Positions 1 to 35,855 of a DNA stretch of 64,000 nucleotides are shown here, piece after piece. The stretch's first letter is position 1, and the number at the start of each line of letters is the position of its first letter. Below the pieces are notes generated by a model, which saw only the letters and a list, made by a program, of their open reading frames with translations, was not told the DNA's origin and did no database searches. The stretch covers positions 62,001 through 126,000 of the forward strand of contig NW_003314261.1 of assembly GCF_000143415.4 (NCBI RefSeq), written 5' to 3'. The translations under genes and the position numbers were made by a program. This DNA comes from Selaginella moellendorffii (taxonomy: Eukaryota; Plantae; Lycopodiophyta).

Positions 1-117
1 AAGATGGCATGTGGCCTCATGCCATTTCTAAATGTGGTCCTAAACCATTCCATGGTGAACATACCAGGAAGCACAAGTGCCGAATATCAAGAGGAAGCGG
101 TAGCCACACCAAAGACA

Positions 118-250
118 GTGCCGCTCGCAACACCGCAACTACTCGTAGCGCCGCTCGCAACACCACAACTGCTCGTAGCGCCGCTCGCACAAACTGCCAC
201 TCGCATAAACTGCCGCTCGCAATGGCGCTCGCAATGCCGCAACCGCTTGT
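118..250 (+). repeat. Short GC-rich tandem repeat (30-bp unit CCGCTCGCAACACCRCAACTRCTCGTAGCG, decaying)
   Basis: Units start at 121, 151 and 181, with degenerate CGCTCGCAA copies to about 250. Confidence 0.85.
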
Positions 251-561
251 AGACGCATAAACCACAGCTCACAACGCCGCTTACACAAGCAGCGCTCACT
301 GCGCTCAGCGGAACCAAGAACACGGCGCACAAAAATGATAGACCTAGGAATGAGTTCGAGAATTCAAAAATAACACACGCTTGAACGTCACATCAAATCC
401 TTTGACAAACCAGATCTTATGATTCCTCTGACAAATTTCAAACTGAGTAGCTTCTAGACTTTGCTGTCAGAGGTTGAACTTTGTCACATCATGTCCTTGC
501 CTCGATCCAGCTATGCCATGTCAGTGATTCGAACTTTGCCATGCCATGTCAGCGATCCGCG

Positions 562-2419
562 CCAAGATTATTCGCCATGTAAAGGAATAATTATGCTGTG
601 TGTGTACGTCCATTTATGGCAATATAAGGCCACACGCCATTCAAAGAATAATGCTAGTCGAGCATTTTTTGGTGCATTTTTGGGTTCAAAATTGCATGAG
701 CCCACACGCTATAAAGTTTACCTGTACCAAAAATAGAAACAGCTTTATTTACTTGGGAATTTAAGTGGTTGAGGCATTTTTAAACTTACAAACACATGCC
801 CTACTTACATTCATTTGGTTGCTTAAAATTCAAAAATATTATAAACCTTTCTTTTTGCATTTTCAATGTTTTCAATTATGGTTTTTGATTTTCGCAGGAC
901 CAGCCTAGTAATCTATTTGCATCCCGTCATGTTTATAGCTAGCTTTCGTTTGTCCCCTTCGCTGGCCTGAGATACATCTGCTCGGAATCTGCCTCTTACA
1001 GCATTTGCCCAGAAAGGGCATCTTTCTTCACGCAGCATTTGCCACATGTTTAGGGTTAGGGTTTAGGGTTTAGGGTTTAGCAATTCAGTAGCTTGATAAA
1101 CATGCAAATACAGAACTTGATGCAAAATCCTTTGATATGTCACAATGCCCCTAGGACCATAAACACATTTCAATAGAGAGGGTCCTTTCATTTCATAACT
1201 CCTTACGTAGATCTTGGTGAAACCAGAGTTAGTGAAGTTGGTTTTTTGTGATCCCGCATCTGATTGTGATGTCCCTTTGCAGTGTCAATGGAAAGGTCAA
1301 TGCACACCAAACTGTAGAATCTTGGAGCAAAATAACGGTCGGATCTATGGCAAATGCCCCTGAAACATTGTAAGGCTCGTATGGTCTCATGTGGTGTCCG
1401 ATCGAGATGCTTCTTTGCAGGGTCATCAAGAAGGACATTGTATACCATTCTGTAAAATCTGGTTGCGATCTAACGGTTGGATCTCCAGGAAACTCAAAAC
1501 AATCTCGCACGTGTTAGAATATTCTAGGAATATACTCCTATGTGCTCCAAGATTATTCGCCGTGTAAAGGAATAATTATGCTGTGTCATTTATGGCAATA
1601 TAAGGCCACACGCCATTCAAAGAATAATGCTAGTCGAGCATTTTTTGGTGCATTTTTGGGTTCAAAATTGCATGAGCCCACACGCTATAAAGTTTACCTA
1701 TACCAAAAATAGAAACAGCTTTATTTACTTGGGAATTTAAGTGGTTGAGGCATTTTTAAACTTACAAACACATGCCCTACTTACATTCCTTTGGTTGCTT
1801 ACATTCCTTTGGTTGCTAGCTTTCGTTTGTCCCCTTCACTAGCCTGAGATACATCTGCTCGGCATCTGCGTCTTACAGCATTTGCCCAGAAAGGGCATCT
1901 TTCTTCACGCAGCATTTGCCACATGTTTAGGGTTTAGGGTTTAGGGTTTAGCAATTCAGTAGCTTGATAAACATGCAAATACAGAACTTGATGCAAAATC
2001 CTTGGATATGTCACAATGCCCCTAGGACCATAAACACATTTCAATAGAGAGGGTCCTTTCATTTCATAACTCCTTACGTAGATCTTGGTGAAACCAGAGT
2101 TAGTGAAGTTGGTTTCTTGTGATCCCGCATCTGATTGTGATGTCCCTTTGCAGTGTCGATGGAAAGGTCAATGCACACCAAACTGTAGAATCTTGGAGCA
2201 AAATAACGGTCGGATCTATGGCAAATGCCCCTGAAACATTGTAAGGCTCGTGTGGTCTCATGTGGTGTCCGATCGAGATGCTTCTTTGCAGGGTCATCAA
2301 GAAGAACATTGTATACCATTCTGTAAAATCTAGTTGCGATCTAACGGTTGGATCTCCAGGAAACTCAAAACAATCTCGCGCGTGTCAGAATATTCTAGGA
2401 ATATACTCCTATGTGCTCC
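562..2419. repeat. Tandem duplication (562-1546 and 1547-2419)
   Basis: Both copies begin CCAAGATTATTCGCC and end ATGTGCTCC. The second copy has an internal deletion of about 110 bp. Each contains a TTTAGGG tract (1048-1080, 1926-1950). Confidence 0.9.
1990..2418 (-). pseudogene. Decayed exon of an unknown protein, divergent from the ParB-like gene (second copy at about 1120-1546)
   Basis: A minus-strand acceptor (TTTTCAG) follows the palindrome at 2425-2445. The frame reads RDCFEFPGDPTVRSQ.DFTEWYTM...RCGITRNQLH, with stops consistent with C>T decay. Confidence 0.4.
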
Positions 2420-3196
2420 TGAAAATGGCATGCGGCCCACGCCATTCAAGAGATAACGCCAGATGACGCCGAGCATTTTTTGGTGCATTTTTTGGGATCA
2501 AAATTGCATGAGCCCACATGCTTGAACGTCATCCTCTGACAATTTATTTAGCTGAACATCTGGCATTTTTGGAAATACAAGATGCTTTGGAATATCCAAT
2601 CATGCATGGTATAAATATAGCGAGGGTATTAAATGATATCCCAATCATGATCTTTCTTTTGGATTTCGCGTGCATGCAGTCCGAGGAATGATGACGTTGC
2701 GGATTTCTTTTGGATTTCACGCATGCGCGCGCCGATCCAGAAATTAATGGTGGCGCCCAAGTCCGAGAAATGATGACGTGGCGGGATTACCAACCGTCGT
2801 GACATTTCGCGCGTGTGAGGTTAGGTTTTGCATTTTGCTTCGTACTCGCGCTCGCACACTCGCGCTCGCATCGCGCTCCCACTCGCGCTCCCACTTCTCT
2901 ACAGGTTTCTCGTGTGCATCGGCGTCCACTCGCGCTTGCATCACACTCGCGCTCGCATCGCGCTCGCATCGCGCTCGTGTGCATCGGCGTCCACTTCAAG
3001 ACACACCCAGTTTGTAACTTCGCCGCCAACTCCGCCGCCCACTCCGCCACCCACACGCAGCCCACTTGGCGTCCCGGGAGATTTCAGCACCACTCTCCAA
3101 CTGTAAGTGGCAGAGTAGCCTTGCTGCTACGATCCGCTGCACACACAGTGCACATTCGCCAGCGAGTCCGGTTGTCACGCCTCCATTCGGCTTCAA

Positions 3197-6100
3197 ATGG
3201 TAAGTCTTTTAGGCCAAGTAGAAAATGGCATGAGGCCACATGCCATTCAGTAGCAACATTGGCATGCACCGATTGGGCTCTCGAGTGCAGTCCGGTTACA
3301 GATGGTGTGTAGCCTCACGCCATCTTAGGATGCAGCCTCAAGACATCTGATGCAGTGGTGAATGGCGTGTGGCCTCACGTTATTTCCAGCTACTAGCTTT
3401 TCATCAGTCAGCTCTAATTGTTGTGCATTTCTGAACAGGCGAGGAATTGCGTTCTTCTTCCAGCCACTGTCAATGTGGATGCAGAGAAGGGGGAGGAGCT
3501 CACCAGTTGGACTTTCGGGATGGAAGGCGAGGATCTAAGGCTGTACAACACAGATGGTGGGAGAAAAGAATGCATGGGGATCCTCATCCAAGTGACAGAC
3601 ACTCCATGCAGTTCCATGCAAGAATATGGACTGGCACTTGTGGTAGAGATAGCGTCTGCCTTCAAGATCCACCTTGCACATCCTAGCGGCTTCTCGGAGG
3701 GGGGCAGCGGCTATGAGGAATTCCTAGAGGGAGCTAGGGAGAGGTTGTCCAGGAGGCCCACAATTTCAAAGACGCTGCGGGTCTATGAAGATCACATGGA
3801 ATCCACGGACCTCACCTACGGCGATGTTCAAAAACTATATTCCAACATTGAGCCGTTGAGAGTGACTCTAGTTTGCGAAGCAAAGGGGAAGGGGGTCGAT
3901 CTGGAAACTACCTCAAAGCAGAAAAGGGTGGTCAAGCTCAAGCCGACGTCCGACTCTCCTGCTCCAAAAAAGAAGCTACTCAGTGATGCCATTGCCTCGG
4001 GTTCGAACACTACACCCACCAAAAAGAAGAGCCGCAAAGAGCAGAAAGAGCAAGAAGAGGCAGCAAAAATCGTCGCAGATAATAGTACTTGTTACTATTC
4101 CAACAAAGTATATACAATCGACGTGAGCCGTATCGACATCCAAAGCAAATGCAACCACAGGCTAGTATCTGATGAGTGGGTGGAGAAATTGAAGCAGAAG
4201 ATGCTGGCAAGTCCAGTAACACCCGACATCGCAGACGTGATCCCCTACTACCAAAAAATGAAGGGCGAGATGAGGTTTCCAGACTTGATCAATAGGAAGG
4301 TGTTGGACGATCAGAACATCCGGTTCTATGCCGTCTCCGGGCAGCATTCTAGCTTGGCGATGCAAGAGATAGTTGTGGATATTATGGTGGGCGAGGAGGT
4401 GAAGAAAGTCTTCAAGACAAGAGTTGTCCGCCTGATAAAAGGCAACTCGCCCCTCCGATCTATCATATACATCTCCCTCAGAGTCGTGCACAAGTCCTCG
4501 TATGTCACAATATGGCCGGGAGTCATTTTGGTCTTGTTGAAGACAACCTCACCACGTAGAAGAGCATTAGCCACTGTCAGAAGGTCGTCATCGTCTAGAG
4601 ACCGCGAGAAACGCAAGGCGTTGAGCTTCAAATCATTGGGCTTCCGGCCGTCCTCCACACCCATTGAGTTTGGCAACTCCCCGTCATGGTACCTCCTCAG
4701 CACATCTACCCATTTGTCAAAAACAACTTTTGTCGCGAGTAGAATGTTATGGATGCTGAGTGTGTCATTGACCCCCAGTGTTTTTGAGAGAAGACTCGAG
4801 AATTCCTGCAATGGAAATGGCGTGAGGCCACATGCTATGCCACATACAACGAGGCTTACCTGCCAGGCGCTAGTTGCTAGTGCACGTCCTTGTCCTGGTT
4901 TTTGTGGCTTCTTCAGTTGAACCCAAAGCTTCCGTGTTCGTGCCAATGTCTCGTGCAGACCCGATTTGTAGCACGTTTCTTGCTTGACATTCTGCGCGTG
5001 CACGACTCTAAGAGCTCGTGCGCTATTGAAGGATTGGATCTTCGAGCAAGTGGCCGTGGAGAGGGTGAGCATCGACACCACGCAAGAGATGATGGAAGCG
5101 CTGGAGTTGTCAAATGAAGACATCGACGAGTACGTGAAGGGGGCCCCCAAGTTTATCGATCTGCTGCGGGATGCCACGAAAAGTAAAGCTGAGAAGTTGG
5201 ATCAGTATCCAAATTTCATTAAGATTGATGTCGACCGCCGGCTTCAGAAACAGCTCGACCCCGCAGCAGAGGCCTATCGAGAACCTTACCGGGTATACTT
5301 GAATTCGGATGAGGATCAAAGGTGGAGGAGCATCGTTTCCCGCGGAGATGAGCAGGTCAAGAACATCTTTTGTGTGATGGACTTCACAAACGAGGAGATC
5401 ACTCATGCAGACGAAGTCAGCTCCATCATTGACTTAATGGTGGGACTTGCGGAGGTGGAATTTTCAGTCCACTATATGATCTACGACTCCGAATCCTATC
5501 ACAAGTTCTGGAAGGCCTTGAACGAGGTGAAGGCTCGGTTGAAAGGCAAGGAGATGCGGGAGATCCATGGGATAATGGCTAAGAAGAAGATACCGACGAA
5601 TGTCTGCATCTTCACACTCGCCCTTGTTATTGGTCCTGCAGCAGAGTGGGACTGGAGTGACTTCCCAGCTTCGTTCGACAAGGCCAATCGAATTGATCTG
5701 AGGGAGGTCAATTTACCCGTGCCTGAGGAACTAAAGACGGCTATGGAGCTTTCGAATCCAAAGAAAGCTCCAGGTGCAGCATGGGAAATGCTCAGCTGGG
5801 TCTTCAACGCAATAGCGGGTGGGTCACCTGCTTCCGACTCCAAGGGCAAATGCGTTGTCGAGTACAACTGCGGCGGACTATTCTTTCGAGCCGCACTACT
5901 CAAGGGTGTCCCGTGTGTTGCGGTGACAAACTCCATTGAAGAGGTGACTTCAATGGAGCATATAATTACAGTTGCCAAAGAAAAACAGTATCTTCTCTGC
6001 GAACCTGGTGAGTACGCACTTTAAGTTTAAATGTTATCTCACAAGCTCTGTATGCAGGAGCGTGGCCACCCCCAGATGCTGAAACGGCGTTAACAGCTAC

Positions 6101-7041
6101 TGTTGAAGATACCCATGTTGGGCCGAGCTCACAACCTGCACAAGGTAAGGTCACGTGAGGCCTCACGCCATTTTGATTATAGATCGTTGTGAATATTCAG
6201 ACACGAGGACTGAAAAGCGCACTGGTGGCGCATCGAAGAAGGACAAACAGAAAAGCAATAGGAAAAAAGGAGGTACAAATTATATTTGCAATGGCGTGTG
6301 GTCTCATGCCATTCCTTGCAGGAAAAACTTCTTCAAAGGCAAAACAGGCAAGCACCAGCCAAGCTCAAACTGACAGTGGTCATAAAAAGCGAAAGCACGT
6401 TGGATAGTCATCGAGATTAGAGGCGTTTGATTCGAAAAGGAAGAAGGGCAACGAAAAGATGATAGGTAATGCCTCGCGGTTATGGCGTGTGTGCTCATGC
6501 CATTCATTGCAGATCAAGCGCTGAGTGAAAGCAGGCAGTCACCACCTCATGACTCAGATTCCTATGGCGGACTCCCCTTCCCCAATCTCAATGGAGAGGT
6601 ACAATGGATGAGGGAAGCTTTTCAAGGTAGGGCCACGTTTTTCTCATCTCGTCGTCTTCGAAGGGTGCAAGAACGTGCAGAAACCATGTTAAGACAGTCG
6701 GGTGAGGATACGGTCCTAGGTCACGCACTAAAACAGGCTATGGATGTCTTGTATTTTGAGATGGAGACTCGGCCAGATGATTTTCCCAAGATACGTTATA
6801 TCAGAAGCCATTTGATCGGACAGACACCAGTCATCATTTATGGCATGTATATTGTCTAGCCAAGCACTATCCGCATCTCCATAATCTGCTCAACCGGATA
6901 AGTTCTTCAACCACTGAACATGAGCGTGGACGTATTAGAGAAGAGATGGCATTACTATTGGGTTTAAATCCTGATAGTGTGGAGAGTGATGAAATTCCAA
7001 GATTATTGTATAGGCGTTGGAGGCAAAAAATAACAGTCTGA
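3197..7041 (+). pseudogene. Multi-exon gene with a ParB/Srx-like domain (about 4105-4440) and a degenerate DNA-methyltransferase-like fold (about 5350-5990), disrupted by an inversion and a premature stop
   Basis: ATG at 3197 is followed directly by GTAAGT. Phase-consistent GT-AG introns lie at 3200-3438, 4859-4806 (inside the inverted segment), 6008-6057, 6145-6182, 6273-6321, 6466-6512 and probably about 6795-6859. Motifs: HRLVSDEWVEKLKQKM...FYAVSGQHSSLA and GKCVVEYNCGGLFFRAALLKGVPCVAV. In-frame TAG at 6405-6407. Confidence 0.7.
4477..5012 (-). other. Intragenic inversion bounded by 15-bp inverted repeats
   Basis: CTCAGAGTCGTGCAC (4477-4491) and GTGCACGACTCTAAG (4998-5012) are 14/15 complementary. 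The interior codes on the minus strand. Confidence 0.85.
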
Positions 7042-8654
7042 GATGGCATGTATTTATTTAAAAATGTAACTTATTATGGCATGGGGTTCCATGCCATTGT
7101 ATTAATATTAAAAGACAATTCTTTGAGAGGATTTGCATTATACTAGAAGTGTTACAGCATGTTATTGGAAGTCTACGAAGTTGTTTTATTAATAATGGGA
7201 AAGTAAAGATTGAATGGGGGACTTGGGCTCCACCTAGACTCGGAGCAACTGAGCCAATATTAAAAGGATGGAAAGAAATTGGACGACGATGACAAGGAGA
7301 AGAAAGAGGTGAAGCAGTGGCAGGGGGAAGAGAAGTGATTGAGTAGACATTTCCTTGTTTAAAATAAAATGGCATGTGCCTCAATGCAGTTGAATTTTGT
7401 TATATTTATATACTATATAAAGGTTTGGAAACCTTATTTTACAAGTGGGATAATGACAATTCCCACTTTAACGAAATAGAGCTTGGTTCCTCTCTACTAT
7501 AATACTAGTTTATCAGATGATAGCTTACTTGGAATACTTCATTGATAATTAACTCTTTAAGATATCATTGTCTATGACTTTGATATTGTCCCTCTATTGA
7601 TCTTTGCGTTTGGGCCAGTAATGGGCAGACTGGCTTCGGCACTTCGTGTGCATGTTGAAATCTCTAGTCATGGGGTAGCTACTGTCGACTGGTCACATAA
7701 CCCGCCTCTCTGTCGATGTTCCTTATTCCGTGAAAGGGCGTGACCGTGTAAACAACTCTAAACTGCCTGTTGACAGTAGTCTATCTAAACCTTACTGACG
7801 GGTTTGGTTTCTTTGCTCAGGAGGGTTGGGGCCTCTGGCTTCTCTCTCTATGTCTCTGCAGGTAAGGCGTATCACACTTTTGTAGCTGGGTGACTCCCAG
7901 AGCAGCAAGGGTGGCTGACTCCGTTGGTCATTTCCTTATCGGCGACGGCCGGAAGGTGTCTGAGCTGGTAGTGCATCCGCGTTAGACAACAAGGTTCCCC
8001 CTAACTCATTTAAGTTGGTGCATTTCTCACATAGTGTGAGTACCGTGAACTTTTTCTGGAGTTGTTTCCTTGGCGGTATTCTAGACTCGAGTGTGCATCG
8101 ACGAGGATGTCGATCTTCCCAAGGGGGGGAGAGTGTCGCGAATGTGACTTCAGGTATCAAAAGTTACCTGTCGGCTAGTCCTTTCTGATACTCTTACCTT
8201 ACTGCCACGATGGCAGGAGGTCGGTATTACTGGACCCTTTATCAGTCCCTCTTGTGCTAGTGGAGTTAACTGGGCATTTCGAGTGTACTTAGATTGGACG
8301 AGCATAAGGACGGAATTCCTACGTGTTATTAGCTAAGCATACTTAGCCCGGTAAGGAGTTCCCATCTCGTTTTGTCTTGCACTTGCTAGTGACAAGAACC
8401 CTCGCGTATTGAGACTAGTCCCTCAATATCGCTACATGATAGCTTACCGTGTCTGCCAAACACCCTCGCTATCATGCCCTTTGTGTTAGTCTCATTTTGG
8501 TCCCAAATGCTATTTATGGAAAGTGTCCAGATTTGCTCATTTGGCATATCTACAGAATGTAGAGATCGGCCTGAACACAATGGTGTTCGTCCCGTGTCCA
8601 AATTCACAATCTAGGGACATTCCATAGTCTCTGGGACAAGCTCGAAACTTACTA

Positions 8655-11773: not shown

Positions 11774-12985
11774 TGTAAGGAACCAACTCTCTAAGGTGTT
11801 GTAGGCTAAAGGATCCCTGAAAGCATGACCAAAATGATAAAGAGTTCATCGGATGGGACCGAGTCGAAGATAGAGTCCAAGGCCGACTCTGAGACCAAGT
11901 TTGAGATAGAGTTCGGGATCGAGTCCGAGGCTGAATCGGAGACCGAGTTCGAGATAGAGTTCGGGATCGAGTCCAAGGTTGAATCGGAGACCGAGTTCGA
12001 GACCGAGTTTGAGACAAAGTTCGAAATCCAAATCGGGTCCGAGAACGAGTCTGAGGTCGAGTCCGAAGTCGAGTCCGAGATCAGGTCCAAGATCGAGTCT
12101 GAGACCGAGTCCAAAGTCAGGTCCAAGATCGAATCCGAGATCGAGTCCGAGACCGAGTCCGAGACCGAGTCCGAGTACTAATATAGGTCAAGGGGTGAAA
12201 GCCCAAAGCATGCGTCTCCCCGTCTCCTAGGGGGGGGGGGGGGGGGGGGGGTTGCAGAGGGTTCCAAAAGTATAGTAGGGATAGTGAGGTCTAGGAACCA
12301 ATCTTGAAGGAACTCTCCAGTGGTGCTTCCAAACTGACTTAAGGTTGAGACTGGGGTCGAGGGGCCTTGGGTGGGAGTGAGTAGAGACTTGGGTGGTGCC
12401 GGAGGGGCCACCCCAGGAAGTGCTCAAGAGTAGCTCCCACTCCCGAAAGGGAAACCGATTGCGGTGCTCTCGACTCATGTGGAGTGGTGCCCCACTTGAG
12501 TACCGTGTGGCTCATTGGTCTTTGCCCTTCCTAGGGGCTTGGGCCTTCCTTCGGGATGGAAGTGGGGGGGTGAAGGTACCCATATCGGGCCATTAAGCCA
12601 CGGTGTTTTGCCCCAACGTCCCGAAGCAAATGTTGCACCCAAGACTTAGGATTTAGGGGGTCCCATAATCAAGTCTTGTGGTACCAAGGGGTGTTAGGAA
12701 CCTGGAGGCTTGGTGTGCTTGGCTGCTTGTGCCTGCGGGGAGTGTAGTCGAACCTTAAGTCCAATCTAACCTGAGGAGGGGGATTGGGAGAGATTTGGGA
12801 ATCCGTGGATGGATGGCTAACGCTCCGTTACTCGTGCAGTGAGTAGTTGAAACCAAGTAGGACCAAGTAGGAGCTGGTATCATAGGCGGGAACCTTGGCG
12901 AGAAAACTTAGCAAAAGTCAAGGTAGTGTTGGACGGATAGACGAGGTAAGCTGGCAAATTGGAAAAAAAAAATTTATGGCTTACA
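11774..12985 (+). mobile_element. Solo LTR (Ty3/gypsy, same family as the 17668 LTR)
   Basis: TGTAAG...CTTACA termini and a 5-bp TSD CTACT on both sides. Confidence 0.9.
11855..12176 (+). repeat. Hexamer-based tandem array (GAGTCC/GAGACC/GAGATC) inside the LTR
   Basis: Visible 6-bp periodicity, which produces spurious E/S-rich ORFs. Confidence 0.9.
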
Positions 12986-13209: not shown

Positions 13210-16200
13210 TTACTCCCCATATTTCAAATATTCCACAGCATTAACAAACCATGCATTTTCTTCCACCATCACCTGCATATGTTTGTCAATTATCCCAACA
13301 AGGCCTGTGATCTTTAACTTCTCATATATGCGCTTTCTTTTGTGGATCTTTGGAACACTCCCACACATTAAATCATCGTTCTGAAACACATTAATATCTG
13401 TAGTAAAACAGATAATCCATTTCAAAAGCCCTCCTTGATGCAAAAACTGTTTAAACTTTGTGACAGCTATCTCCTCAATTTGTGATCTTTCCTTAAAACC
13501 TTTGTTGTGCAAAAACAGATCATCAATATCTAACCTGTCCAAAGCAATTATCAAGTTAAGTCAAAGAACAAATCATCAATGTCTAACCTGTCCAAGGCAC
13601 TTGTCAAGTCTGTCTTCGACCTAACTTTGTGTTGATATAGCGAGAAGACAGGAACTTGCTTCTCTCCTACCTTGCTGATGCAAGCAGCAATCATGTCAGG
13701 TCCAAATCTAATAACATTTCCACTATAAAAAAAAGGCCGAAAGGATTCCTACAACAAAACAAATTATTCCACAATTGAAAAATCAACAATGCAAGGAGAA
13801 TACCTGTTGCTTTCCTTGTAAAACCACCTCAAACTGCTCAAGCCATGCCAGAAAGGTCATCCCATTGTCCTCTTCAGGCATTTGCTGTATCATCTCACAG
13901 TTGTTTGACCTTGGCACTTGTAGAGGATGCTTGTAGACCGGATCCACTTTTTCCTTGTACACCTTTGGGATAAAATCCACTGGTGCCTTATTCTCCAAAA
14001 ACTGCAGAAGCAAGGGAGCGGAATACGGTTCAAACTTCACCCCTAGCTCTGACTTGCTGCAAACACCCATATCATTGATCAGCTTCTTCTGCACATCTAC
14101 ACTGGCTGTGAGATAGTTCCACAAAGCCCTCACTACAAGCGGTTCTCCAATCTCAACAGTTCGAAGGGAAACCTGTGCTGCATTCTGAGGAGCAGCTGAG
14201 CAGAAATCTGTATCCGGTTTGAAATGCAAAGGCTGGTAGCTGCTCTCCCCAGTCCGTCTCAGCCTGCCGATCCCTGCTTGTACAAATCTCAAATCACTGT
14301 CCGTGACTGCCAGGCTTACAGGAACTCCCGTGTACACCCGCAGCAGCAATAAAGTTATGACCACCTCCCAACACCCAGGATGGAATGATGGTAGTGCAAA
14401 GAACTTCACAACATCGTCCCACACAGATCTGTTGATGGAGAGGGCAGGGCCTGGTCGCCTACACAAATCATCTGCCTTCTTCAAGAAATAGTCTGTAGCG
14501 ACCAATCGTTGCTCCTCTGAATCCCGTAAGAACATCTGTAACACTGTCACGTAAAACCTGTATCTGCCTCTGTAAACACCAAAGATCGTGCTGAAGTCGA
14601 AATCACACACGTCTTTCACAAACTTCACTGTGTACTCCTTGATAGATTCGGCACTAGAAAAATGCCCAAAGTCAGAGTACACATAATAGCTGAGTTTGTC
14701 TTTCACGGTCTCTGAAAGGGAGTCTAGCATCCGTATCAAATGCCGGCCTGTCCCAGATATTATGGTATTTTCGAACTTCATGTCACGCAGAGCCAAGGCG
14801 AGCTTGTCTAGCATCGACAGGTTAACGTCACTCACAGTCAGGCCCCTAAACCTGTTCTCCAGCAAATGTGATAGTTCTTGGCATTCGTCTATTACCACAA
14901 CGCCCTTATCATCCCAGCGTACCTGTCTTTTAAGCTCATCGAGAATGTCAGGAAAGATGTCGCTTGCAGCTTCAATGTCGGATGAATTCCGGATCAGACT
15001 GAGTATTCTCCTCGTCAGCTCCCTCCATGGATCACGCCATGGATAATTCAAGTGTGAAAAGTATAGCTGCACAACACAAACAATTTAGCTCCCTCACAAA
15101 CCAAACACGAATCTTACTTGCTTAAAAAGCCAGACGAGCCGGGTAACGTCGATGCCTGCAGAGCGAGCTTCTCTCAAAATGTAAAACCTCGATATGAAAA
15201 CTGCTGTAAGGCACACCATTAAGGCGTCTTCTGGGATGACTCCCTCGGGATACAAGCGTCCCAATTCTGTTGCAACGTGATAAAGATCTCGAGAACCTTC
15301 ATCCCCTGATCCGCTCTCCGTAACACCCGTCAAGTAAATGGAGTCCCTCTGACAAGATATTTCGTAGAGCGTCCTTGTTTTGCCACTGCCAGAAGCATCA
15401 ATCAAGAAGCAGAGGTCTGTATCCCGCAGCTTCCCAAGCACCTCTGACGCAGACCCGATATAATCTCCATCCTCCAGCCCCTCTAGTAACAGAACCGCCC
15501 TGCCTTTTAAGGTACATAACTCCTTGCTGCTACGAGAATAAGAGTGCTTAAAATATTGCTCTGGAGGCATGGAAGGAAGACGTTCCTTCACCCGTTCCCA
15601 AACTTCAGCACAGACGTCTTCAACGTTCTTCCGGGTTAGTGCCCCTGGAACAGCGATGGCCACAGAATTAAACACAGCCAAAGGGCAAACAGGATCGAAC
15701 AGGACCACAAGGATGCGGAGATTACCACACAGAGAGTAACACAAGACAGATGTCAGGAAGCAAAAATCCCTACATGGAAGCCAGAGCAGGATCCTGACCA
15801 GAAGTAGTCCAGTGGAGCAGGAAAACTTGAAACGCAAAACCCAGCTCTAAGCCGAAGAAGACACAGACAGCATTAATACAACGCAAGGGAAGCAGATGGC
15901 CGTGAATTTAATTACAACCACAAGCCAGACACAAGCACCCAAGAACAACCTTGAAACCCTATAGACATCCGCCGATAGGAATGGGACTTCCGACATGGAT
16001 GCATGTGCAAGGAAACAAAGGGCTTTCACAAATTGCTTACCAGATCTGCGGATTCCATGGGGCACTGCAACATTCACAACATAACAAAGTTAGTATAAAA
16101 AACTATCAATAAACATGGCCAGAAGCCATAGCCATACAAGGATGACTAAGGATCCACAAGGGAGTATGCGTCAGCATAGCCAACCTATGACTTACCATTA

Positions 16201-16436: not shown

Positions 16437-18283
16437 TTTGGTAGCTGAAACCCTTTCTTGAAACCATCTTGTATGGAATCGTCAGGAACCGCACGATCTT
16501 CATCCGACGGCCTGGTGTTTTAGACCATTAACTCAATTATAAACACAGCCACACTTTTGTTTGTTTAAGCGATTTTACAGTTTTGTAGGGTCTTCCCATG
16601 CGCTGGCCACCAAAGTGGAGAATGTTGCCAAGGCCATCCTATCCACAATCACCTCTTGTACCACACTGTTTTGTTTTCCCTCTGTAGATTCTAGAGCTCC
16701 AGGCGAGTGGGGCGAGATCCAGAGCCCAAGCGTGCAGACAAGATGGATTTGGCTGTTCTGGCAGAAGAAGCTATGGAGGTTGATATTTCCTCGGCTCCTC
16801 TAGGCTCCTCCACCCTTGGACGAAGATGGTGCCGTTTGTGCACTCTCCAAAGCTCTTGTCCTCACTCCACAGCCTGGCGAGGTCGTCTCCCCAACGAACT
16901 CCTTGATCACACAGTACCAGTCAGAGATTGATCGCGTACTCAAGAGCCAGGGAGAAGCTGACAGACTGCATCCTGTAGCAGTACCAGCAACTGGAATCCG
17001 ACAAGTCGCTGCTGCCACCACTGCCATCTTCCAACTCGTCCAAACAATCGCTGGAGTGTTGTGATGTGAAAAGGGATGGACATAACACTCATGAGCTCGT
17101 TCATTGTGTTCCGACTCTTTTTACATGACTCAAGGGACATGACTCATACCACGTGGACATGCCATGTCAGCTGATCGAGACTGACATCTTGACACTCCCA
17201 CTCTGGCTGGATCAGCTGAGAGGATGGACTACCCCTCCCACTCAGCCGAAACAGATGGAGAGCAGACTCCCAGTGCAGCGCGATGCCATTCAAACTGTTG
17301 TGGTTTTATTGAGATTGAATTCTCTAGATCGAAACAACCACCAAAAGAAAAGAATTAACCGGATGTGTCTCCCTACGTGATGTGCCAGCCATGTGGCTGT
17401 CCACCTACTCTAACAGTCCCACTCGGACAGACACCTAAGGCTGCACAGAACTGGGAGAACTTCGGCGTGGACAATGGCTTTGTAAGCACATCTGTGGGCA
17501 TGTCCTGTGTGGGGCAGTAGCTAAGCTAGATTACCCCATCTTCGAACTGGTCCCATAAGAAGTGATGCATTGTGTCCATGTGTTTTTTCTGGGAATTAAT
17601 TTTGCGATGTTTACTCAAGGCTATGCAGCATTGATCATCGCAATAGATTAGTGTTGATTACCAAAGTTGTAAGGAACCAACTCCCCAAGTTGATGTAGGC
17701 TAAAGGATCCCCGAAAGCATGACCAAGACCAAGTCCGAGTACTAATACAAGTCGAGGGGGGGGAGGGGGCTGCGGGAGGGGGGGTTCCAAAAGTATAATA
17801 GGGATAGTGAGGTACAGGAATCAGTCTTGAAGGAACTCTCTAGTGGTGCTTCCAAACTGACTTGAGGTTGAGATTAGGGGTTGAGGGGCCTTACTAAACA
17901 TGGACTTGGGTGGTGCCGGAGGGGCCACCCCAGGAAGTGCTCAAGAGCAACTTCTACTCCCGAAAGGGAAACTGACTGCGGTGCTCTCAGCTCATGTGGA
18001 GTGGTGCCCCATTTGAGTACCTTGCAGCTCATTGGTCCTTGCCCTGCCTAGGGGCTTGGGCCTTCCCTTCGGTTTAGGGTTTAGGGTAAGTGGGGAGTAA
18101 GAGTACCCACACCAGGCCGTTAGGCCATGGTGTTAACCCCCGGTCTCCCGAAGCAAGTGGTGCACCTAAGGCTTGGGATTTACAAGTCTTGTTGTACTAA
18201 GGGATGTTAGGAACTTGGAGGCTTGGTGTGCTTAGCTGTTTGTGCCTGCGGGGAGTGTAGCCGAACCTTAAGTCCAGTCTAAC

Positions 18284-19724
18284 TATGAGACATCAAATCC
18301 CTAGGCCCCAAAGTGGAGCCAAAATGGTGCCACGTGGTAGTGGCCAAAGCGAAAGCCAAATGAGTGTAACACGTTTGGACTAAAAGCTCCGACTTGAATG
18401 GTCGAGAGCGGGAGTAGAACTCCCAACAAAGTGCTCGAGGAACAAACATGAAGCAAGCAATAAGTGAGTCTCTAAAAAAGGGACACGAGATGGACCTGAG
18501 ATGGAGTCCGAGATGGACCCGAGATGGAGTCTGAGATGGAGTCCGAGATGGACCCAAGATGGAGTCCGAGATGGAACCGAGATGGAGTCCAAGATGGATT
18601 CGAGATGGAGTCTGAGATGGACCTGAGATGGAGTCCGAGATGGACTCGAGATGGAGTCCGAGATGGAGTCCAAGATGGACCCGAAATGGACCCAAGATGG
18701 AGTCCAAGATGAACCCGAGATGGAGTCTAAGATGGAGTTCGAGATGGAACCGGGATCGAGACCGAGACCGGGACCGAGACCAGGACCGAGACCGAGTCCG
18801 AGTCCGAGGTGTGGGGGTTGGAGCCCAGTGGAGCTAGTTTTTTTCCCAGGAAGGCCATACCCAGCTGTTGGGTGATGGGATGACCACTGGGAAGTCCAAG
18901 ACTAGAATGAATACGGACAGACAAGCGGGGTAGCTTGGTGAAGTGTTCAAGAGCCAGCTTTAGTTCCCTTGGGAGATTGAATGGTTGATGCTCCCAGTCC
19001 AAGTGTGGGTGGCACTACCTACTTGGATACCTAGTGTGGCTCAATGGAACCTCGCTCTAAGCCTATGGCTAAAGCACCCAAGTACGGAAGGCGGGGAGAG
19101 TACCCAGGTGGCTCATGTAAGGCCACGATGTTCCGAAATGTTGCTCCAAAGTCCCAGATTGTGGAAAAGAAGAGGAGTAGACCTTTAGCGTAGTGGCTAA
19201 GGATATAATGACATGGTGAGGAAGTCCTAGAGGACATTGGGACTTAGTGGTTGGGCCTGTGGGCCTTGACCCAGTGGCAGTGTTGGTGAACATAGCCATG
19301 GGTAGGACGGGACTTAGTGGGGATTGAAAGAGGGATATTGGGGAAGGTTGTTCCCCTTGTCAGTGGGCATCCTAAGGATGCTAAGGAGTGGATCTGGGAT
19401 GACCACTTATGGATGGTTGGCTCAGTCTTGGAAAGATAGGATTGTGATGTAAGTAGTATTGGACCACCAGTGCGGCGAAGGTGATTGAGCATAGCCTTAG
19501 CATAATAGGCTGCTCTGTCAGTGGTACCTTTGAGTGTCGGTCATATGATCGGACACATGGAGCACTTGGACCAAGTGCAAAGGTTGAGTGGCAAGGATGC
19601 CATTCTCAGGGCTAGCCAGCCCCAGTCCAAAATGGGACTTATGGAGGTTGTGAGTGAGACTCCTCCAATTAGTCGGAGGTGTGGTTAAGTGACTAAAGTA
19701 GAATGGAAAATTTAATCGCTTACA
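18284..19724 (+). mobile_element. Solo LTR of a second family nested in the chromovirus 5' LTR
   Basis: TSD CTAAC at 18279-18283 and 19725-19729, ending in CTTACA. Removing it restores colinearity with the 11774 solo LTR. It contains a GAGATGG-based array at 18487-18808. Confidence 0.85.
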
Positions 19725-22390: not shown

Positions 22391-25300
22391 AGGGGGGGGG
22401 TGGCATTTTGTAGAGAGCATTGAAGCATTTTTTGTGTTTGAGCGAGCGTTGGGGGAGGTGCCCCTCCTTCCCCCAACAAATGGTGAACCCGGCGTCACAT
22501 GCAGCACTTTTTGAGGAGTCATTTTTCTCTTTTTCTTTGGGCTGCAGAATTTGGGAAGGACTTCCTTGTTCGTCTTGCAGTAGTTTTATTTGATCTTAGG
22601 CTTGCTGGATAGATCTAGAGCTCCTCTTTCCAGAAAGGTATGGCGTTCATCAAGCTGTGCAGTATTTGAAGAGATATAATGTTTCTTGGCTTAGTCGGAG
22701 GAACATTTTGGGGTTTTCACTTTCTCGCCTCGATCCTCGGCCCAATTTCTCAAAGTAGTGCATTTGGGCTTGTAGATCTGGTCTAGATCTATGAGTAGTG
22801 GTGATTCTTGGCACTAGATTTGAGCAAATTGACGGCATGTAAAAGGATTTTCTTCTCTGGCTAGATTGGTTCATCTTTGTAGTAGGGATTCGTGCTCCTC
22901 TGGGCTTCATTTTGGATGCCGTTTGTTTCTAAAGGTGCTCTTGGTCCTAGGATCTCCAGAAATACCAACGGTGCCTTAGTATCAATCTACATCAGTGACA
23001 TGCACATGTTTTTCCACAATATTGGCATTCAGGGCTAACTCTTTGTGGATTTCAGGGGATATTGAGGCGGCTTCTTCACAAATTCTTGCAATAAGAGGGT
23101 AGAAGAGGCTGAGCACTTTCCAATGAGCCCACTAACAGTAAAAATGGGGAAGGATTGAGACTAGAGGACTCATTTTCCTCTTTTGGGCTAAACTTTATTG
23201 GAGGTTTCTTGGGAATGAAGCAATCTTCAAGGAACAGGTAGGCATAGAAACAGGAACAGGGGGAGCAAGAACAAGGGTTGGCATAAGAACAGGGACAGTA
23301 GGAACAGGCACAGGGATAGGAGTTGGTGTTGGAGTAGGAGTGAGAGCAGGTGGTTACCGGTTATAGGTCCCCGGCTACTAGTTACCGATTACCAGTTATT
23401 GGTTACTGGCTACTCCAGCGGCTACTCTAGCAGCTACTTCAGTGGCTACTCTAGCGGCTACTCCAGCGGCTACTTCAGCGGCTACTCCAATGGCTACTCC
23501 AATGGCTACTTCAACGGTTACCCTAGCGGCTACTCCAGCGGCTATGGGTCAATGGTTACGTGTGCTTGAGGCCTACATCTACCTCCATTTTGACCCTTAT
23601 TTCTCTTCGTCATAGGCATGTTGGGCAACTTTGAGCAACTTGAGCACTATCCTACAGTCTTCTTGGTCCTTTCAACCTAGTTGCCTTGACCGGGCATTTG
23701 CAATGTTTGGGGTATTTGATGCCGGTACAAACTAGACGTGTAAAAAATTGGCACCCTTTTACGATACCTCAAGGCCCTAAGGTATGGATTGAACTTTCTA
23801 ACATCCAAAGGTAGCTTAGGTATGACATTGCACCTTCTTGGGCCGAGTCCTCTTCATCTTCGGTAGATTCCAGTGACTTAGATCTACAAGCTATGGCACA
23901 GCAACCTTTAGCTCGACCTCAGCTTCATGTTCTGCAGAAGGGGACTGATCTACCTACCTTTTCAGGTGTTAGAATAGTCTCTCCAACATTGCATATCAGT
24001 CGCTTTGATGACTACTGCACCACTAACATGATCGTCGACGATGATCGTATATGCCTTGACTTCTTGCAGTCTCTCGAAGGCAAAGCAGCAACTTGGGCAG
24101 ATTCTCTCTGTCCAGAGGACCAAACAGACTTCTAGACACTGCTTGCTTCTTTCAGAGAATGTTTGGTGGAAGAAAAACCCACAAATCGGCTACTTGTTGA
24201 CCTCTTTTCATTCCGGTAGGGTGCTCACAAGTCTATTTCTGATTACATCACCCGGTTTTGAGCATACTAGAAGCAATGTTGGGATTGCAGAGTGGTCCAA
24301 GATGAGCAACAGGGGATCACAGCATTCACAGCAGGTCTGCATGGGAACTTGCAGCGGAAACTTCTTAACAAGACATTTAGCTCTTGTCGCAAGGCATTTT
24401 TGTTTGCCTGGAAGTTGGAAAGAGAGCTTCTTGTTGACCTAGGGATTGCTATAGTTGATTTTGACCAAGCCATCACCCTGTCAGAGTCACCTTGTGCAGC
24501 TGTTCGCCCATCCACAACAAAGCCCGTCGCTGTTGAGCATACACCTTCGGCTATTGAGAACTTTGCCAATGAGATGCGGCAGTTGAACGAGATCATTCTT
24601 CAGCAACAATCACACCATGACAAATGGCTCCAAGAGCTGGTGGAGTCCAGGAAAGAGGCCATTACAGCTCGGGAATGCAGATTTAAGTCTCGTTGGTGCA
24701 CTCATTGCAAGATGAACACACACAACACACAGCGCTGCTTCAAGCTTCACCTAGAGCTTTGGCCTCCACCTTCCCAATGTATCCAACAACATCCCTTTGC
24801 TGATAATCCACATCGTCTCGGAGTCCCAAGACATATTAGGAGCAGTTGGAGCGACAAGCAATTGAGGCAGCCCCTTCGTCAAGCAAAGGCAAGGCACCAG
24901 CCTCATTAGTCATCACGATTTTGGTAGCCAAGGAACTCTATAGGCAACAGCAGCAAACTGTAGCCACTCGAGCCCAAGCAAAGAAGGAAGCTGCTCAGCC
25001 TGCCACAGATCCCCCGGTGCCAGTTGAGAGCGAATCTCCATTGGCATCAGTCCCAGTATCACAGAGGGTGGCTTGTAAGCTCCCCTTCAAGTCATTACTC
25101 TCTTCTCCTCCTGAGATCTCACCAACAGCTACTCCTGTTCTGGAGCCGGTTCTTCAACAGCTGGTTGACACTCCCGTCACCTTTTCGCTCTGAGATATGT
25201 TGTGTCTTGTCCCAGGATTTGGCCAGCGTTTAAAGGAGTTTGCACGGTCAGGAACACCAGAGAGCACTCTCAAGAGGACCCCTCAAGAGGTGCACATTGT

Positions 25301-28300
25301 TGACATGACAAGATATGGTGGAGATCCTGGTCCATTCTTTGTCCCGGTGCAGATTGGTACTTCCTCTTGTAGGATGGATGCTTTGGTTGACTCCGGTTCT
25401 GGAAGCAACATTATCTCTCTCGAAGCCACCCTTTCAGCACAGCTACAGATCACCAAGAGCTCCTCCATTGTGCTCAAGACCTTCACCAACCACACTGTTC
25501 CTCCAGCGGGCATTTGCTGTGGTGTCAAGGTTTCAGTGCAGGGTGTTATTTCTGAGGTAGATTTCCTCGTGGTTGACTACCAACGTCTTGGAACATCCTC
25601 ATTTAAGGACTCTGTCATCCTTGGCCGCTCATGGCAAGTCACAGCCCATTGCACCATTGACAACGCCCAAGGCAAGATGGAAATTAGCGATGAAACCCAT
25701 CGTGCCACTTTTCTCAACAACCATGGTAAAGCTCTTTCTCAGCATGCCCAGCAGGCTCAGACTAAAGTGTTCTCCACACCACACTTTCCTCTTGAGCTCA
25801 CAGAGGCTTTTCCTGAGTTGGCAGTGGAGTCAACCATCTATACGACGGATGCTTTCTCATGCAATGTGATTGACATTGTTGGAAGTGAGTTAGATAGATT
25901 GAGACATCTCTCAGCTTCACTCTCTTTATTTGAGAGTAAGGCCGAGCCTCTAGCCATGCCCTCTTTATTTGATAGCGGGGCTTATAGAGTATGGGTTCCT
26001 ACATCCAGCTTTCCGGAGTGTTTCTCAATAGAGGAAGGGCTCCTTGATTCGTTCCTTGCATGGGACCAACTCTTTCTTATGGAGCTTGACAACACGGTCA
26101 CTCCAGAACAGGTCTATCTTTCGCAGCACACAGCCGAACTCAATCCTCCTCAGCAACTATCTGAGATGTTACTCAGCCAGCATCTTCCTACAAAAATCAT
26201 GGTAGTTGACAACTCCGAGTGTATTTTGTCATGCCGTTTGTTAGAGATGGAAGAAGACATCCAGACACACAACTGGCAGAAAGAATCAAGCCAATCGAAC
26301 GTGCTGCATGCAACTTATAGCTCTTTGAGTTCAAAATTTCCTACCATAGAGCCCCCGGTACAGTTCCAAGTGTATTACACTGAAACTTCAGCACCAGACT
26401 TGGAATGGACTGCGGTGGAGGATCTTCCTTCACTTACAGAGTACTTGGTTACAGTCCTTGCATTGGACATTGAGTGCTCAGAGCATCAGAAGCAAAGAGA
26501 ACAAAAGACAAAGACTCTGGATCCAACAACAACGTTCTTACCAGACTAACCAGAGACGGTCTTGCTAGATGTGGTGTCCCCCGCATCTTTATTTGAAGAA
26601 GAGGACACTCCTAGGATTACAGCTTATTTTGACGGTGCTTTCTGCCCCAAAAACCAGGTAGCCAGCATCAGAGTTTGGATGATTGATTTTGTGGAGAACA
26701 AAGTAGCCGACCTCTCTATTACTTTGCCAGAAACATCAGCTAACGAAGCAGAGTACTTGGCAGCTATCAGTGCCATGAAGTTGGCCACAGATCTCAAGTT
26801 TAGGTGAGTCACTTTCGTTGGAGATGCACAACTCATCATATGCCAACTTACTGGAGAATACCAAGTCCGCAAAGAGAACCTGAAAGAGCTATGGCAGCGG
26901 GCGGTCAACCTGAAGGATGAGTTCTCTCAGGTGACTTTTCAAAGTGTCCCTCGTGAAGAAAACTTTTGGGCAGACATGTTATCACATCAAGCAATCACCA
27001 TGATGCGAGAGGCAAAAGGCACTTCCTGCTCTTTAGTTTCCAAAGTCAAGGAGGAATCTGAGATAGATGAGCCCCCTGAGCCCAAGGTTTCTCCAGACTC
27101 CAGGGTTCATGCTGTTTTCCTACGCGTCTGCATTGACTTTCAAGACTTGAACAAGGCAACTGCGAAAGATCACTTTCCAACTCCATTTATCGATGTGATT
27201 GTGGATGAGATGGCTGGACACCGTTACTACTCTTTCATGGATGGCTTTTCAGGGTACAACCAGATCTTCATTCATCCCGATCATCGAGATCTTATGGCCT
27301 TCCAGACACCTTGGGGCGTCTTCGCTTTCAACGTCCTCCCATTTGGCTTGTGTAACGCCGGAGCTACGTTTCAGTGCTTTATGACCCATGCCTTTCATGA
27401 CTTGATGGGAGGCACCTTGAGGGTGTATATGGATATGGATATGGATATATGGATATGCACGACCTCTGACTCCTTTGAGGACCACCTTGTGCACTTGGAG
27501 CAGACCTTCACTCGTTGCCGACAACACAAGTTTTCATTGAACCCGGCAAAGTGTAAATTCGGGGTGACTGAAGGCTGGCTGCTGGGCTTTGATGTCTCAC
27601 AGGAAGGGATCAAGCCCTAGGTAGCCAAGGCTCAGGAGATTCTAGATCGGAACCCACCAACCAACGTGAAGCAACTTTGTAGCTTCCTTGAGCAAACGGG
27701 TTTCTTTCGCTGTTTCCTCCACAACTATGCTACATGTTCACAGCCTCTGATAGCTTTGCTACAACAAAATGTTCCATTTGTCTGGGGTGAGCCCCAGCAA
27801 CAAGCCTTTGAATCACTAAAGCAGTCACTCCACATGGCCCTGGTACTCCAACCACCAGAACGACAACTTTCTTTTGACTTTTACATCACAACGGGTATAG
27901 AGGCTCTTGGAGTTGCCTTTGCCAATGTTCACAGCCTGGCAAGCCACCACATGGAACATACTATGCATCACATTTGTTCAAGGAGACTGAGAAGAAGTAT
28001 GTGGATGCAAAAAAAGAACCAGTGGCTGTTTTTTACACCTTGGAGCGATTTCGTCACTTTCTCACTGGAGCCCGTATCCATTTCCACATCTATTTTAATG
28101 TTTTGACCTTTCTTTTACAGTAACCGATCCACAGTCCTCGTACTTTATCCTGGATTGTGAACATCCAAGAGTTCCAGCCAACTTTTCACATGCGGCAGAA
28201 GTGTGTGATGGATCTGAGCGAGTTCCTGGTTGCCGAAGCTACTTCCTTTGTGGTCCCAGCAGCATTACAGGACATTGCAGTGTACCTGGATTCATGTCAA

Positions 28301-34200: not shown

Positions 34201-35089
34201 TGTGCACCGTGACACGGCCCGGAAATTCTTGTGTCCAACGCCTGAAGAACTTACCAAGGGCTTTGCGATTAAGCGCAACCCATTTGTCCTTTTCGTCTTG
34301 AGGAGCTGCTGCACCAGGTGCAAGGTCTCACGCTGTCACTCCCCACAATCCACGTTCATCTAGGTAGTATTCGATCCGTCGTTTCCAGATTGAAAAATCA
34401 GTGGCCGTGAATTTTGGAGGCGCTGCATCGGCTGTGACGGTGATGGAAGGGATTGGAGGAGGAAGGGGAGAAAGAGGAGGAGGTGGAGGAGGAGGAAGGG
34501 GAGAAAGAGGAGGAGGTGGAGGGGGAGGAGGGGAAGGAGGAGGAAAAGGCGTAGCCATCTCCTTAGGAGACGCTCCTATCCACTCAGTCCAGTTTTGAAG
34601 AACCCTAACCAACCGATCCTTGCTCTAATGCATCTGGTGATGCATCGCGTTGCTGCTCATGCATGCCTACGCATCCTACGTTGCTGTCTTCGTCTCCTCG
34701 TCATCCAGGATCGATGAACCTACCATGTTGTGGTTTTATTGAGATTGAATTCTCTAACCAAAATAAAAGAATCAACCGGAAGTGTCTCCCTACGTGACAT
34801 GTCAGCCACGTACTCTAACACAAAGGAGTCTCGAGCTAAAGCCTTCGTGAGTATATCAGCCACCATTGCTCGGTGGGGCAATATTCCAGCAACAACTTTC
34901 CATTTTGGACTTGTTCCCGCACGTAGTGGAAACGAATCTCGATGTGTTTTGTCCGAGAATGGAAGCGAGGATTGGCGGCCAGTGCAAGGATCACTCGGAC
35001 AGAGGTCAACTTCACAACTGGTGAGTACGTCTCCATGTATTCCAAACCTGGAATCTGGCTGAATCCCCATGCGACAACCTGGCCTTGAA

Positions 35090-35790
35090 TTTTGCGGAGA
35101 AAGCAGTGATGGCGAGAGTTCCATATTGACAAGCAGTTGGATGCCTTATTTATCTAGCCAGTTGGAGCAATCTCAAGATTTCTTGAGACTCCAGGAGAAG
35201 TTCATTGGAGTGCTGTTAAACGAATTTTCAGGTATTTGCGAGGAACAGCAGGATATCAACTGAGCTACAGAAGCAGTAGCAGCGTGTCTAGCAGCAGTGG
35301 GAGCTCCAGGAGTATGCAACTTGTCGGCTTTACAGACTCAGATTGGGCTGGCGACAAGGATACAAGAAGATCAACTTCAGGATATCTTTTCTTCCTGGAT
35401 GGTGGACTTGTCAGCTGGAGCAGCAAGCGACAAGCAATCATAGGACTTTCATCCACCGAGGCTGAATATATTGGTGCAACAACAGCAGCTCAAGAAGCGA
35501 GGTGGCTTACAGATTTTCTGGAGCAGATTGGTGTTCCAGTGCAGCAGCCAGTGACTTTGTTTTGTGACAATCGAAGCGCGATTGAGTTGTCGAAAAATCC
35601 GAAGTTCCATGGCCACACCAAGCACTTCGAGATAAAGGTACATTTTATTCGAGAGCAGGTTCTAGCGAACAGAGTGCAGCTGAGCTATTTTTCGATGAAG
35701 CAGATGACAGCAGACATTATGACAAAAGCTTTGAGCAAAGACAAGTTTCAACAACATCGTGAAGGTATGAGCGTTATGGAGTATCGATGT
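35090..35790 (+). mobile_element. Copia RT-end/RNase H fragment
   Basis: GFTDSDWAGDKDTRRSTSGY, LSSTEAEY, CDNRSAI, ADIMTKAL. Confidence 0.9.
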
Positions 35791-35855
35791 AGACTGTGCA
35801 AGAGAGAAATGGTTGTATGATTGAAACTTTCAATATAGAGTAGTGGATCAAGGCT

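Follow-up and report, generated by a model that had tools for sequence, protein, structure and literature searches.

A dispersed palindrome shared by the right-hand portion of a large transposon with terminal inverted repeats and two MITEs of Selaginella moellendorffii, and its placement in the introns of a broken orphan gene

The first 7482 nucleotides of the 64-kb stretch of Selaginella moellendorffii DNA analysed here (contig NW_003314261.1, positions 62,001 to 126,000; referred to below as the window) hold, on the + strand, the right-hand part of a large DNA transposon that ends in a terminal inverted repeat (TIR), that encodes an orphan gene broken by an inversion, and that carries a dispersed palindromic motif from position 4 to position 7390. 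Within the window this motif is specific to the transposon (1-7482) and to two MITEs (miniature inverted-repeat transposable elements) that have its TIR. The reading that we favour, to which we give slightly better than even credence, is that the palindromes are cis-acting sites for a protein encoded by the transposon and that the MITEs are mobilised in trans. The 24-bp dyad motif would then be a family-specific cis element that is packed into the region upstream of the gene, into introns and into the subterminal stretch at the 3' side and is kept off the coding exons, and the MITEs would be mobilised through the TIR and the subterminal motif that they have in common with the large element.

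The core of the motif, AATGGCRTGNGGCCNCAYGCCATT, is dyad-symmetric over 22-24 bp, and when the copies are aligned together with their flanks, only ~24-26 bp prove to be shared among them. A scan with the pattern ATGGCRTGNGGCCNCAYGCCAT, allowing up to three mismatches, found 14 matches in the window where shuffled sequences predict 0.00; three of these belong to the MITEs, and the other 11 fall within 4-7097. At up to five mismatches there were 17 matches, four in the MITEs and 13 in 4-7390, in agreement with the count of about 13 copies across this segment that was given in an earlier note on this DNA. The other ~56 kb of the window contain no copy. The copies range from a perfect match to the pattern at 4-25 to degenerate forms such as the one at 691-712, which has three mismatches, a duplicate at 1667-1688 and a related copy at 2503-2524, and they include a subterminal copy at 7076-7097, a degenerate copy at 7369-7390 that lies ~55 nt inside the TIR, and two gapped variants near 615-640 and 2425-2446. 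As the flanks of the copies are unrelated, segmental duplication cannot have produced them.

The right TIR occupies 7443-7482 (+ strand) and ends in ...CCCACTTTAACGAAATAGAGC, with TT as the next two bases; within it two AAGTGGGA units face each other as an inverted pair. It matches the left end of the first MITE (40200-40239) at 37 of 40 positions (93% over 40 nt), as the earlier note had stated, and the corresponding end of the second (62150-62192) at 88% across 43 nt. Both MITEs are 288 bp long, lie on the + strand and are 98% identical to each other. MITE 1 (40198-40485) reads AT, GCTTTATTTCGTTAAAGTGGGAC ... GTCCCACTTTAACGAAATAAAGC, AT around an AT-rich core, has palindromes at 40240-40261 and 40415-40436, and is flanked on both sides by the 11-bp direct repeat GTTTAGGGTTT; MITE 2 (62151-62438) has palindromes at 62193-62214 and 62368-62389 and TCCGC on both sides. 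As the earlier note had also observed, there are thus two palindromes in each MITE; they lie one near each end, at a distance of 13-27 nt inside each TIR. The two sequences are short, non-coding, AT-rich inside, nearly identical to each other and similar at 37 of 40 TIR positions to a larger element, in keeping with what is expected of MITEs. A repeat search found no second copy of the TIR within 1-7482; the only copy there is at the right end, and the element therefore extends past the left edge of the window, so that its left TIR and any transposase gene are located outside. The proposal that the segment belongs to a large TIR transposon is upheld by the terminus that it has in common with the two MITEs and by the confinement of the palindrome, within the window, to the element and these MITEs.

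The placement of the palindromes relative to the gene is a feature that the earlier note had not recorded, and the same is true of the inversion that breaks the gene. The coding exons make up ~2.8 kb, or ~37% of the segment, and contain none of ~15 palindrome copies, an outcome with a probability by simple arithmetic of 0.63^15 = ~0.001. Copies are found in five of the six introns, and those that remain either precede the gene or belong to the 3' subterminal region. The gene model, on the + strand except where noted, begins with a putative start codon at 3197-3199 (exon 1), followed by a predicted GT-AG intron of 239 nt at 3200-3438 that carries three palindromes (at 3225, 3302 and 3362) and by a large coding exon of 351 codons at 3439-4491 that would specify the N-terminal part of the protein. 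Past 4491 the sense frame looks like nonsense and it is the minus strand that reads as protein: the 506 bp at 4492-4997 are an inverted block, in frame on the minus strand, which includes a predicted GT-AG intron of 54 nt (4806-4859, minus strand) with a palindrome at 4817-4838. The 12-bp sequence AGAGTCGTGCAC marks the inversion junction at 4480-4491 (+) and forms a perfect inverted repeat with its reverse complement at 4998-5009. The coding exon for the C-terminal globular part follows at 4998-6007, and beyond it, at 6008-6512, short exons alternate with an intron that lacks the palindrome (6008-6057) and with introns that carry one palindrome each (6145-6200, 6273-6321 and 6466-6512).

Translation of the inverted block from the minus strand gives a frame that runs without interruption through the two junctions (...ISLRVVH/AQNVKQ... 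and ...EDLCTTL/RARALL...), and with the block turned and GT-AG introns of 239, 54, 50, 56 and 49 nt removed, the predicted spliced frame is open for 920 codons, up to ~6408. The block was turned in silico for this frame check only, and the homology searches described below were made with unaltered pieces of the window. The spliced gene of the earlier note is accordingly retained as a prediction of 920 codons, with the amendment that it is obtained only when the 506-bp block is read on the minus strand. An in-frame stop is located at ~6406-6408, and a coding-looking tail, read from the sequence in two shifted frames at 6513-7040 (+) and with no family match, probably stems from 3' exons of this gene that have decayed, or else from a second small gene. 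The inversion could be a real lesion of the present copy or an artefact of assembly. To judge from its sequence, this copy of the gene is dead, the inversion splitting it and the 3' exons carrying a stop and frameshifts. The orphan gene (at least 920 codons) probably specifies an accessory protein, the alternative being a very divergent transposase.

We infer that a dimeric protein encoded by the element, either its transposase or an accessory protein, would bind the motif, and two groups of plant transposons provide precedents for what such binding might accomplish. Short motif copies just inside the TIRs, kept in non-autonomous derivatives and bound by an element-encoded protein, are known from En/Spm (the TnpA sites) and from Ac/Ds. 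In those elements the motifs do not extend past a few hundred subterminal bp, whereas the motifs described here span at least 7.4 kb and extend into the introns of an internal gene. A different precedent is VANC, the protein of the Arabidopsis VANDAL21 transposon, whose motifs are short non-palindromic repeats that gather in the non-coding parts of the element. VANDAL21/VANC is described in a recent paper on red-algal transposons as the sole transposon known to bind its own sequence and to modify it (bioRxiv 10.1101/2025.02.11.637652). Like the protein predicted here, VANC is an orphan restricted to its lineage and an accessory protein of a DNA transposon in a plant, and it acts on its own element; VANDALs are without long TIRs, whereas the element in the window has clear TIRs and dependent MITEs. 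Binding of the palindromes might therefore serve transposition, after the manner of the subterminal repeats of En/Spm and Ac, or protection against silencing, after the manner of VANDAL/VANC.

Several observations weigh against this reading. The binding of the motif, the choice of the protein and the purpose of the binding are all read from the arrangement of the sequences. The left end of the element and the transposase fall beyond the window, and no second, full copy is at hand from which to judge the conservation of the gene or of the positions of the motif. The target-site duplication is ambiguous, as the flanks permit AT at the four MITE ends, 11 or 4 bp at MITE 1 and 5 bp at MITE 2. MITEs would keep anything that lies within ~70 nt of the ends of their parent, so that retention of the motif is in itself no proof of function. 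Finally, the stems of 14 independent palindrome copies, read on the + strand, consist of 100 Watson-Crick, 14 G:T and 2 A:C pairs, and an excess of G:T over A:C is not predicted for a pure double-stranded-DNA site.

The earlier note had seen ParB/Srx-like and methyltransferase-like motifs in the gene, and an explanation built on that assignment competes with the one we favour. It holds that the gene product joins a ParB/Srx-like DNA-binding domain to a DNA methyltransferase fold of the beta class, which may be inactive, that the protein loads on the palindromes as ParB does on parS, and that it marks or shields the element. Certain strings in the translation have some resemblance to the relevant motifs, and AVSGQHSSLA and VVEYNCGGLFFRAALLKG are probably what was read as motifs in the earlier note. 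The first contains SGQHS, at residue 301, which resembles DGQHR and has neither the Asp nor the Arg of the DGxHR region; the proposed methyltransferase motif I (VVEYNCGGLFF...) is NCGGLF, which is without the GxG of the S-adenosylmethionine-binding FxGxG; the string GQGRALA at residue 387 is outside the position expected for the arginine motif of ParB; and the catalytic motif IV, [DNS]PP[YFWH], is absent from the 920-aa model. No profile or sequence search gives these strings a score. The stretch called ParB-like (~4084-4491, within the exon at 3439-4491) has no family match, and the stretch called methyltransferase-like (within 4998-6007) has no match in the exhaustive phmmer search described below. 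For all exon pieces, Pfam at E<=1 returned no ParBc, N6_N4_Mtase or other methyltransferase family, and the profiles of NCBIfam, PHROGs and PADLOC (E<=10) returned no ParB-type or methyltransferase family, with the pieces 3439-4491 and 4084-4491 included; nor did these four libraries yield any other family of relevance. A phmmer search of PDB sequences with both large exons found nothing relevant, the N-terminal exon matching only P450 and PerR at E ~1, and a word-indexed library of 5.8 billion clusters had no match for either of the two large open reading frames (ORFs). An exhaustive phmmer search, made with the C-terminal 346-aa ORF only, found 0 matches at E<=0.001 among 1.84 billion representatives, a collection in which algal ParB-methylase proteins would be expected to appear. 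Comparison with phages and plasmids by tblastn gave noise only (E ~0.5-7). A 'DNA primase' match that recurred in the tblastn results, and was the best of them, was set aside as noise, since it maps to the N-terminal region of DnaG and not to ParB. Single-sequence AlphaFold2 models had predicted local distance difference test (pLDDT) values of 35 and, for the ParB-like piece, 31.8, and were unusable for a fold search; structure prediction failed because there were no homologues for an alignment. The gene looks like an orphan because its source lineage is without representation in the libraries.

Precedents from algae, in the form of accessory proteins proposed to bind motif arrays in their own transposons, lend support to the reading that we favour as well as to the ParB and methyltransferase assignment. 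In the red-algal giant Plavaka transposons (EnSpm/CACTA), which carry the accessory genes PAG1-3, arrays of inverted repeats adjoin the ParB-like PAG3 and self-binding has been proposed (Petroll et al. 2025, bioRxiv 10.1101/2025.02.11.637652), and PAG2 is a PF01555 methylase with a SET domain (bioRxiv 10.1101/2025.02.11.637652). Plavaka and the window element are alike in being large TIR DNA transposons with a non-transposase accessory gene and with inverted-repeat units inside the element. The repeats of Plavaka form tandem arrays by PAG3, the partner domain of PAG3 is a 2-oxoglutarate oxygenase, and the methylase is a separate protein that Pfam detects, whereas the motifs of the window element are single, dispersed and mostly intronic, neither PF01555 nor ParB gives a signal, and the termini are unlike those of CACTA elements. 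A counterpart in size and layout is the 1104-aa accessory protein of Ectocarpus Sola1-1_Ec32, in which a ParB-like domain is joined to an N4C/N6A DNA methylase, and which is encoded by a TIR transposon of >20 kb, the proposal being that it binds this element and modifies it (PMC12477816). The window protein is of similar size (~1000 aa), and the domain order of the Sola1-1 protein matches that of the earlier note's reading; the likeness is one of description, standard tools recognise the domains of the Sola1-1 protein and recognise none in the window protein, and the Sola1-1 host is a brown alga. Fusions of ParB-HTH (helix-turn-helix) to Dam-like methylases occur in chlorophytes and chytrids as well. 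The resemblance to the ParB-parS systems of bacteria and phages consists of a palindromic site of 16-24 bp that is present in several copies on the replicon that encodes its binding protein; the gene in the window differs in being eukaryotic, intron-containing and without detectable ParB homology, and partition is inconceivable for a chromosomal transposon. The parS-like loading model draws solely on the arrangement of the motif, and the ParB/Srx and methyltransferase assignment is, on the sequence presently in hand, an unsupported guess. It retains some probability since the red-algal PAG3 is itself detectable by HHpred only, at E=0.29, so that blank HMMER results are not decisive, and we consider the explanation that depends on it improbable. 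The 2025 reports of giant transposons in red and brown algae also make the description of the arrangement as undescribed too strong; for land plants, we found no report in the literature of a ParB-type accessory protein.

About as improbable, in our estimation, is an explanation in which the palindromes are not double-stranded protein sites, but hairpins in a single-stranded nucleic acid (a pre-mRNA or a transposition intermediate) or what is left of a small introner-like unit from which the short introns of the gene arose. The pair counts given above suit this explanation, and the hairpins predicted for the palindromes are stabler than those of shuffled sequences (z about -3). Three of the introns are also related over their whole length: those at 4806-4859 (minus strand), 6273-6321 and 6466-6512 align end to end over 47-54 nt, with a score of ~20 as compared to -4 +/- 3 for shuffles, and have in common a 5' end of GTAA(T)GCCTCG, a 3' end of CTCAYGCCATTYMTTGCAG and the palindrome between them. 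The 3' arm of the palindrome, CTCAY, has the position of a branch point, ~16 nt away from the acceptor, and by our reading the arm and the CCATTYMTTGCAG that follows it resemble a branch point with its pyrimidine tract and acceptor. Given their likeness, the three introns may have had an introner-like origin or may have been homogenised. The same core is found, on the other hand, in copies that are not in introns (upstream, at the 3' end and in the MITEs), and the G:T pairs are in excess on the + strand of the window whatever the orientation of the copy, including the copy in the inverted block and those in the MITEs. The strand asymmetry would fit a single-stranded hairpin and would fit equally a local strand-biased change of C to T or decay of CpG, and we leave it unexplained; the stems of 8-9 bp are short, moreover, the copies are few, and the pairs of any one copy depend on each other. 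Of lower probability still is the proposal that the palindrome is functionless, a short repeat multiplied within the element through duplication and drift, and that its presence in the MITEs is due only to its nearness to their ends. Many copies are indeed degenerate, with 3-5 mismatches, and a recent tandem duplication in the upstream region has copied variants of the motif, yet the unrelated flanks rule out segmental duplication as the source of the copies, and the motif is off the exons, in nearly every intron, and dyad-symmetric in most of its copies. Standing between these explanations in probability, and to our minds doubtful, is a broader scenario of a giant plant TIR family with an orphan accessory protein of ~1000 aa that is highly diverged from, yet related to, the ParB-type self-binding proteins of algal giant transposons, whose palindromes were seeded in almost all introns of the protein's own gene, possibly by an introner-like unit that supplied a branch point and an acceptor, and which came to form a parS-like platform that the MITEs exploit.

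To return to the transposon itself, the ends of the element and of the MITEs read (AT)GCTTTATTTCGTTAAAGTGGGA. CACTA elements are recognised by the start for which they are named, hAT elements by an 8-bp target-site duplication and YAGRG ends, and Tc1/Mariner elements by a duplication of TA. These three families were considered and rejected: there is no CACTA start, no direct repeat of 8 bp or 3 bp and no TA flank, so that the earlier note's remark on the dissimilarity of the terminus to CACTA, hAT and Mariner ends holds. For the ISL2EU group, a 2-bp target-site duplication that is typically AT has been described (PMC4122938). All four MITE ends have AT beside GC...GC, which fits such a duplication, yet AT is self-complementary and may equally well represent the outermost bases of the TIR, and the TT rather than AT that follows the right end of the large element bears on the same point. 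A THAP-DDE transposase and a YqaJ exonuclease gene are further marks of ISL2EU, and the Pfam families THAP, DDE_Tnp_4 and YqaJ have no match in any ORF of 1-7482, a result that covers the right-hand part of the element only. As regards the 9-11 bp duplications of MULEs, the 11-bp repeat beside MITE 1 is inside a telomere-like repeat, where 4 bp is equally possible, and the repeat beside MITE 2 is 5 bp. No paralogous empty sites by which the duplication might be fixed were found in the window. The family is probably an unclassified one of TIR transposons. Scans of metagenomes with the TIR pattern and with the palindrome pattern gave 0 matches each, Rfam gave no match, and a full-text search of the literature for the TIR and palindrome strings found no paper that contains them.

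The region upstream of the gene has repeats of other kinds as well. The tandem duplication mentioned above occupies 611-2400 (+) and has a unit of ~870-976 bp, an identity of 93-99%, and an array of TTTAGGG and variants of the palindrome in each copy. The octamer CGCTCGCA is present five times in an array at 122-233 (+) and four times in a second array at 2849-2968 (+), directly upstream of the first exon of the gene; 9 of its 11 matches in the window are within these two arrays, against an expected 0.63. The octamer may be another motif specific to the element, or a repeat that belongs to the promoter. The interstitial TTTAGGG arrays are at 1048-1080, 1925-1951, 18073-18086, 39431-39587, 40487-40500, 41696-41709 and 41972-41992, and a 14-mer of this kind has 16 matches in the window against 0 expected. 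A 41-nt inverted repeat of TTTAGGG-like units (39515-39555 and 41694-41734, 93% identical) brackets 2.2 kb of sequence that holds MITE 1, and this unit may represent a further TIR element, one whose ends are telomere-like.

Most of the remaining window is made up of nested copia-type and other long-terminal-repeat retrotransposons (13783-15837 on the minus strand, 24292-36400 and 46800-62170), recognised by RVT_2, RVT_1, rve and gag. The closest relatives of the copia reverse transcriptase ORF in the protein library are <=50% identical to it, and several ORFs of 250-430 aa in the retrotransposon regions have no Pfam match. Between retrotransposon fragments there are long tandem coding-like arrays with periods of 12 nt (and 11/12/23 nt), of the GAGTCCGAGACC and GGCTACTCCAGC types, at 11851-12200, 18453-18800 and 23384-23556. 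The only piece of a host-like gene that we saw is a UDP-glycosyltransferase fragment at 44587-45018 (minus strand) with a plant-type PSPG box, HPAVGGFITHCGWNLMLES, which is probably a fragment of a pseudogene. Taken with the TTTAGGG arrays and the copia elements, this fragment makes it likely from the sequence itself that the DNA comes from a plant, and not from a human.

In its present state the material amounts to one dead, truncated copy of an element with an orphan gene, and is a lead for transposon curation rather than a discovery as yet. If the motif is bound by the element's own protein, however, the family would be the second plant case, after VANDAL/VANC, of self-recognition through dispersed internal sites and the first such case with clear TIRs and dependent MITEs, and it would tie the elements of land plants to the ParB-like accessory proteins of red and brown algae. 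The sites in the introns bear, in addition, on how short introns originate and on the manner in which regulatory sites come to be packed around the genes of transposons.

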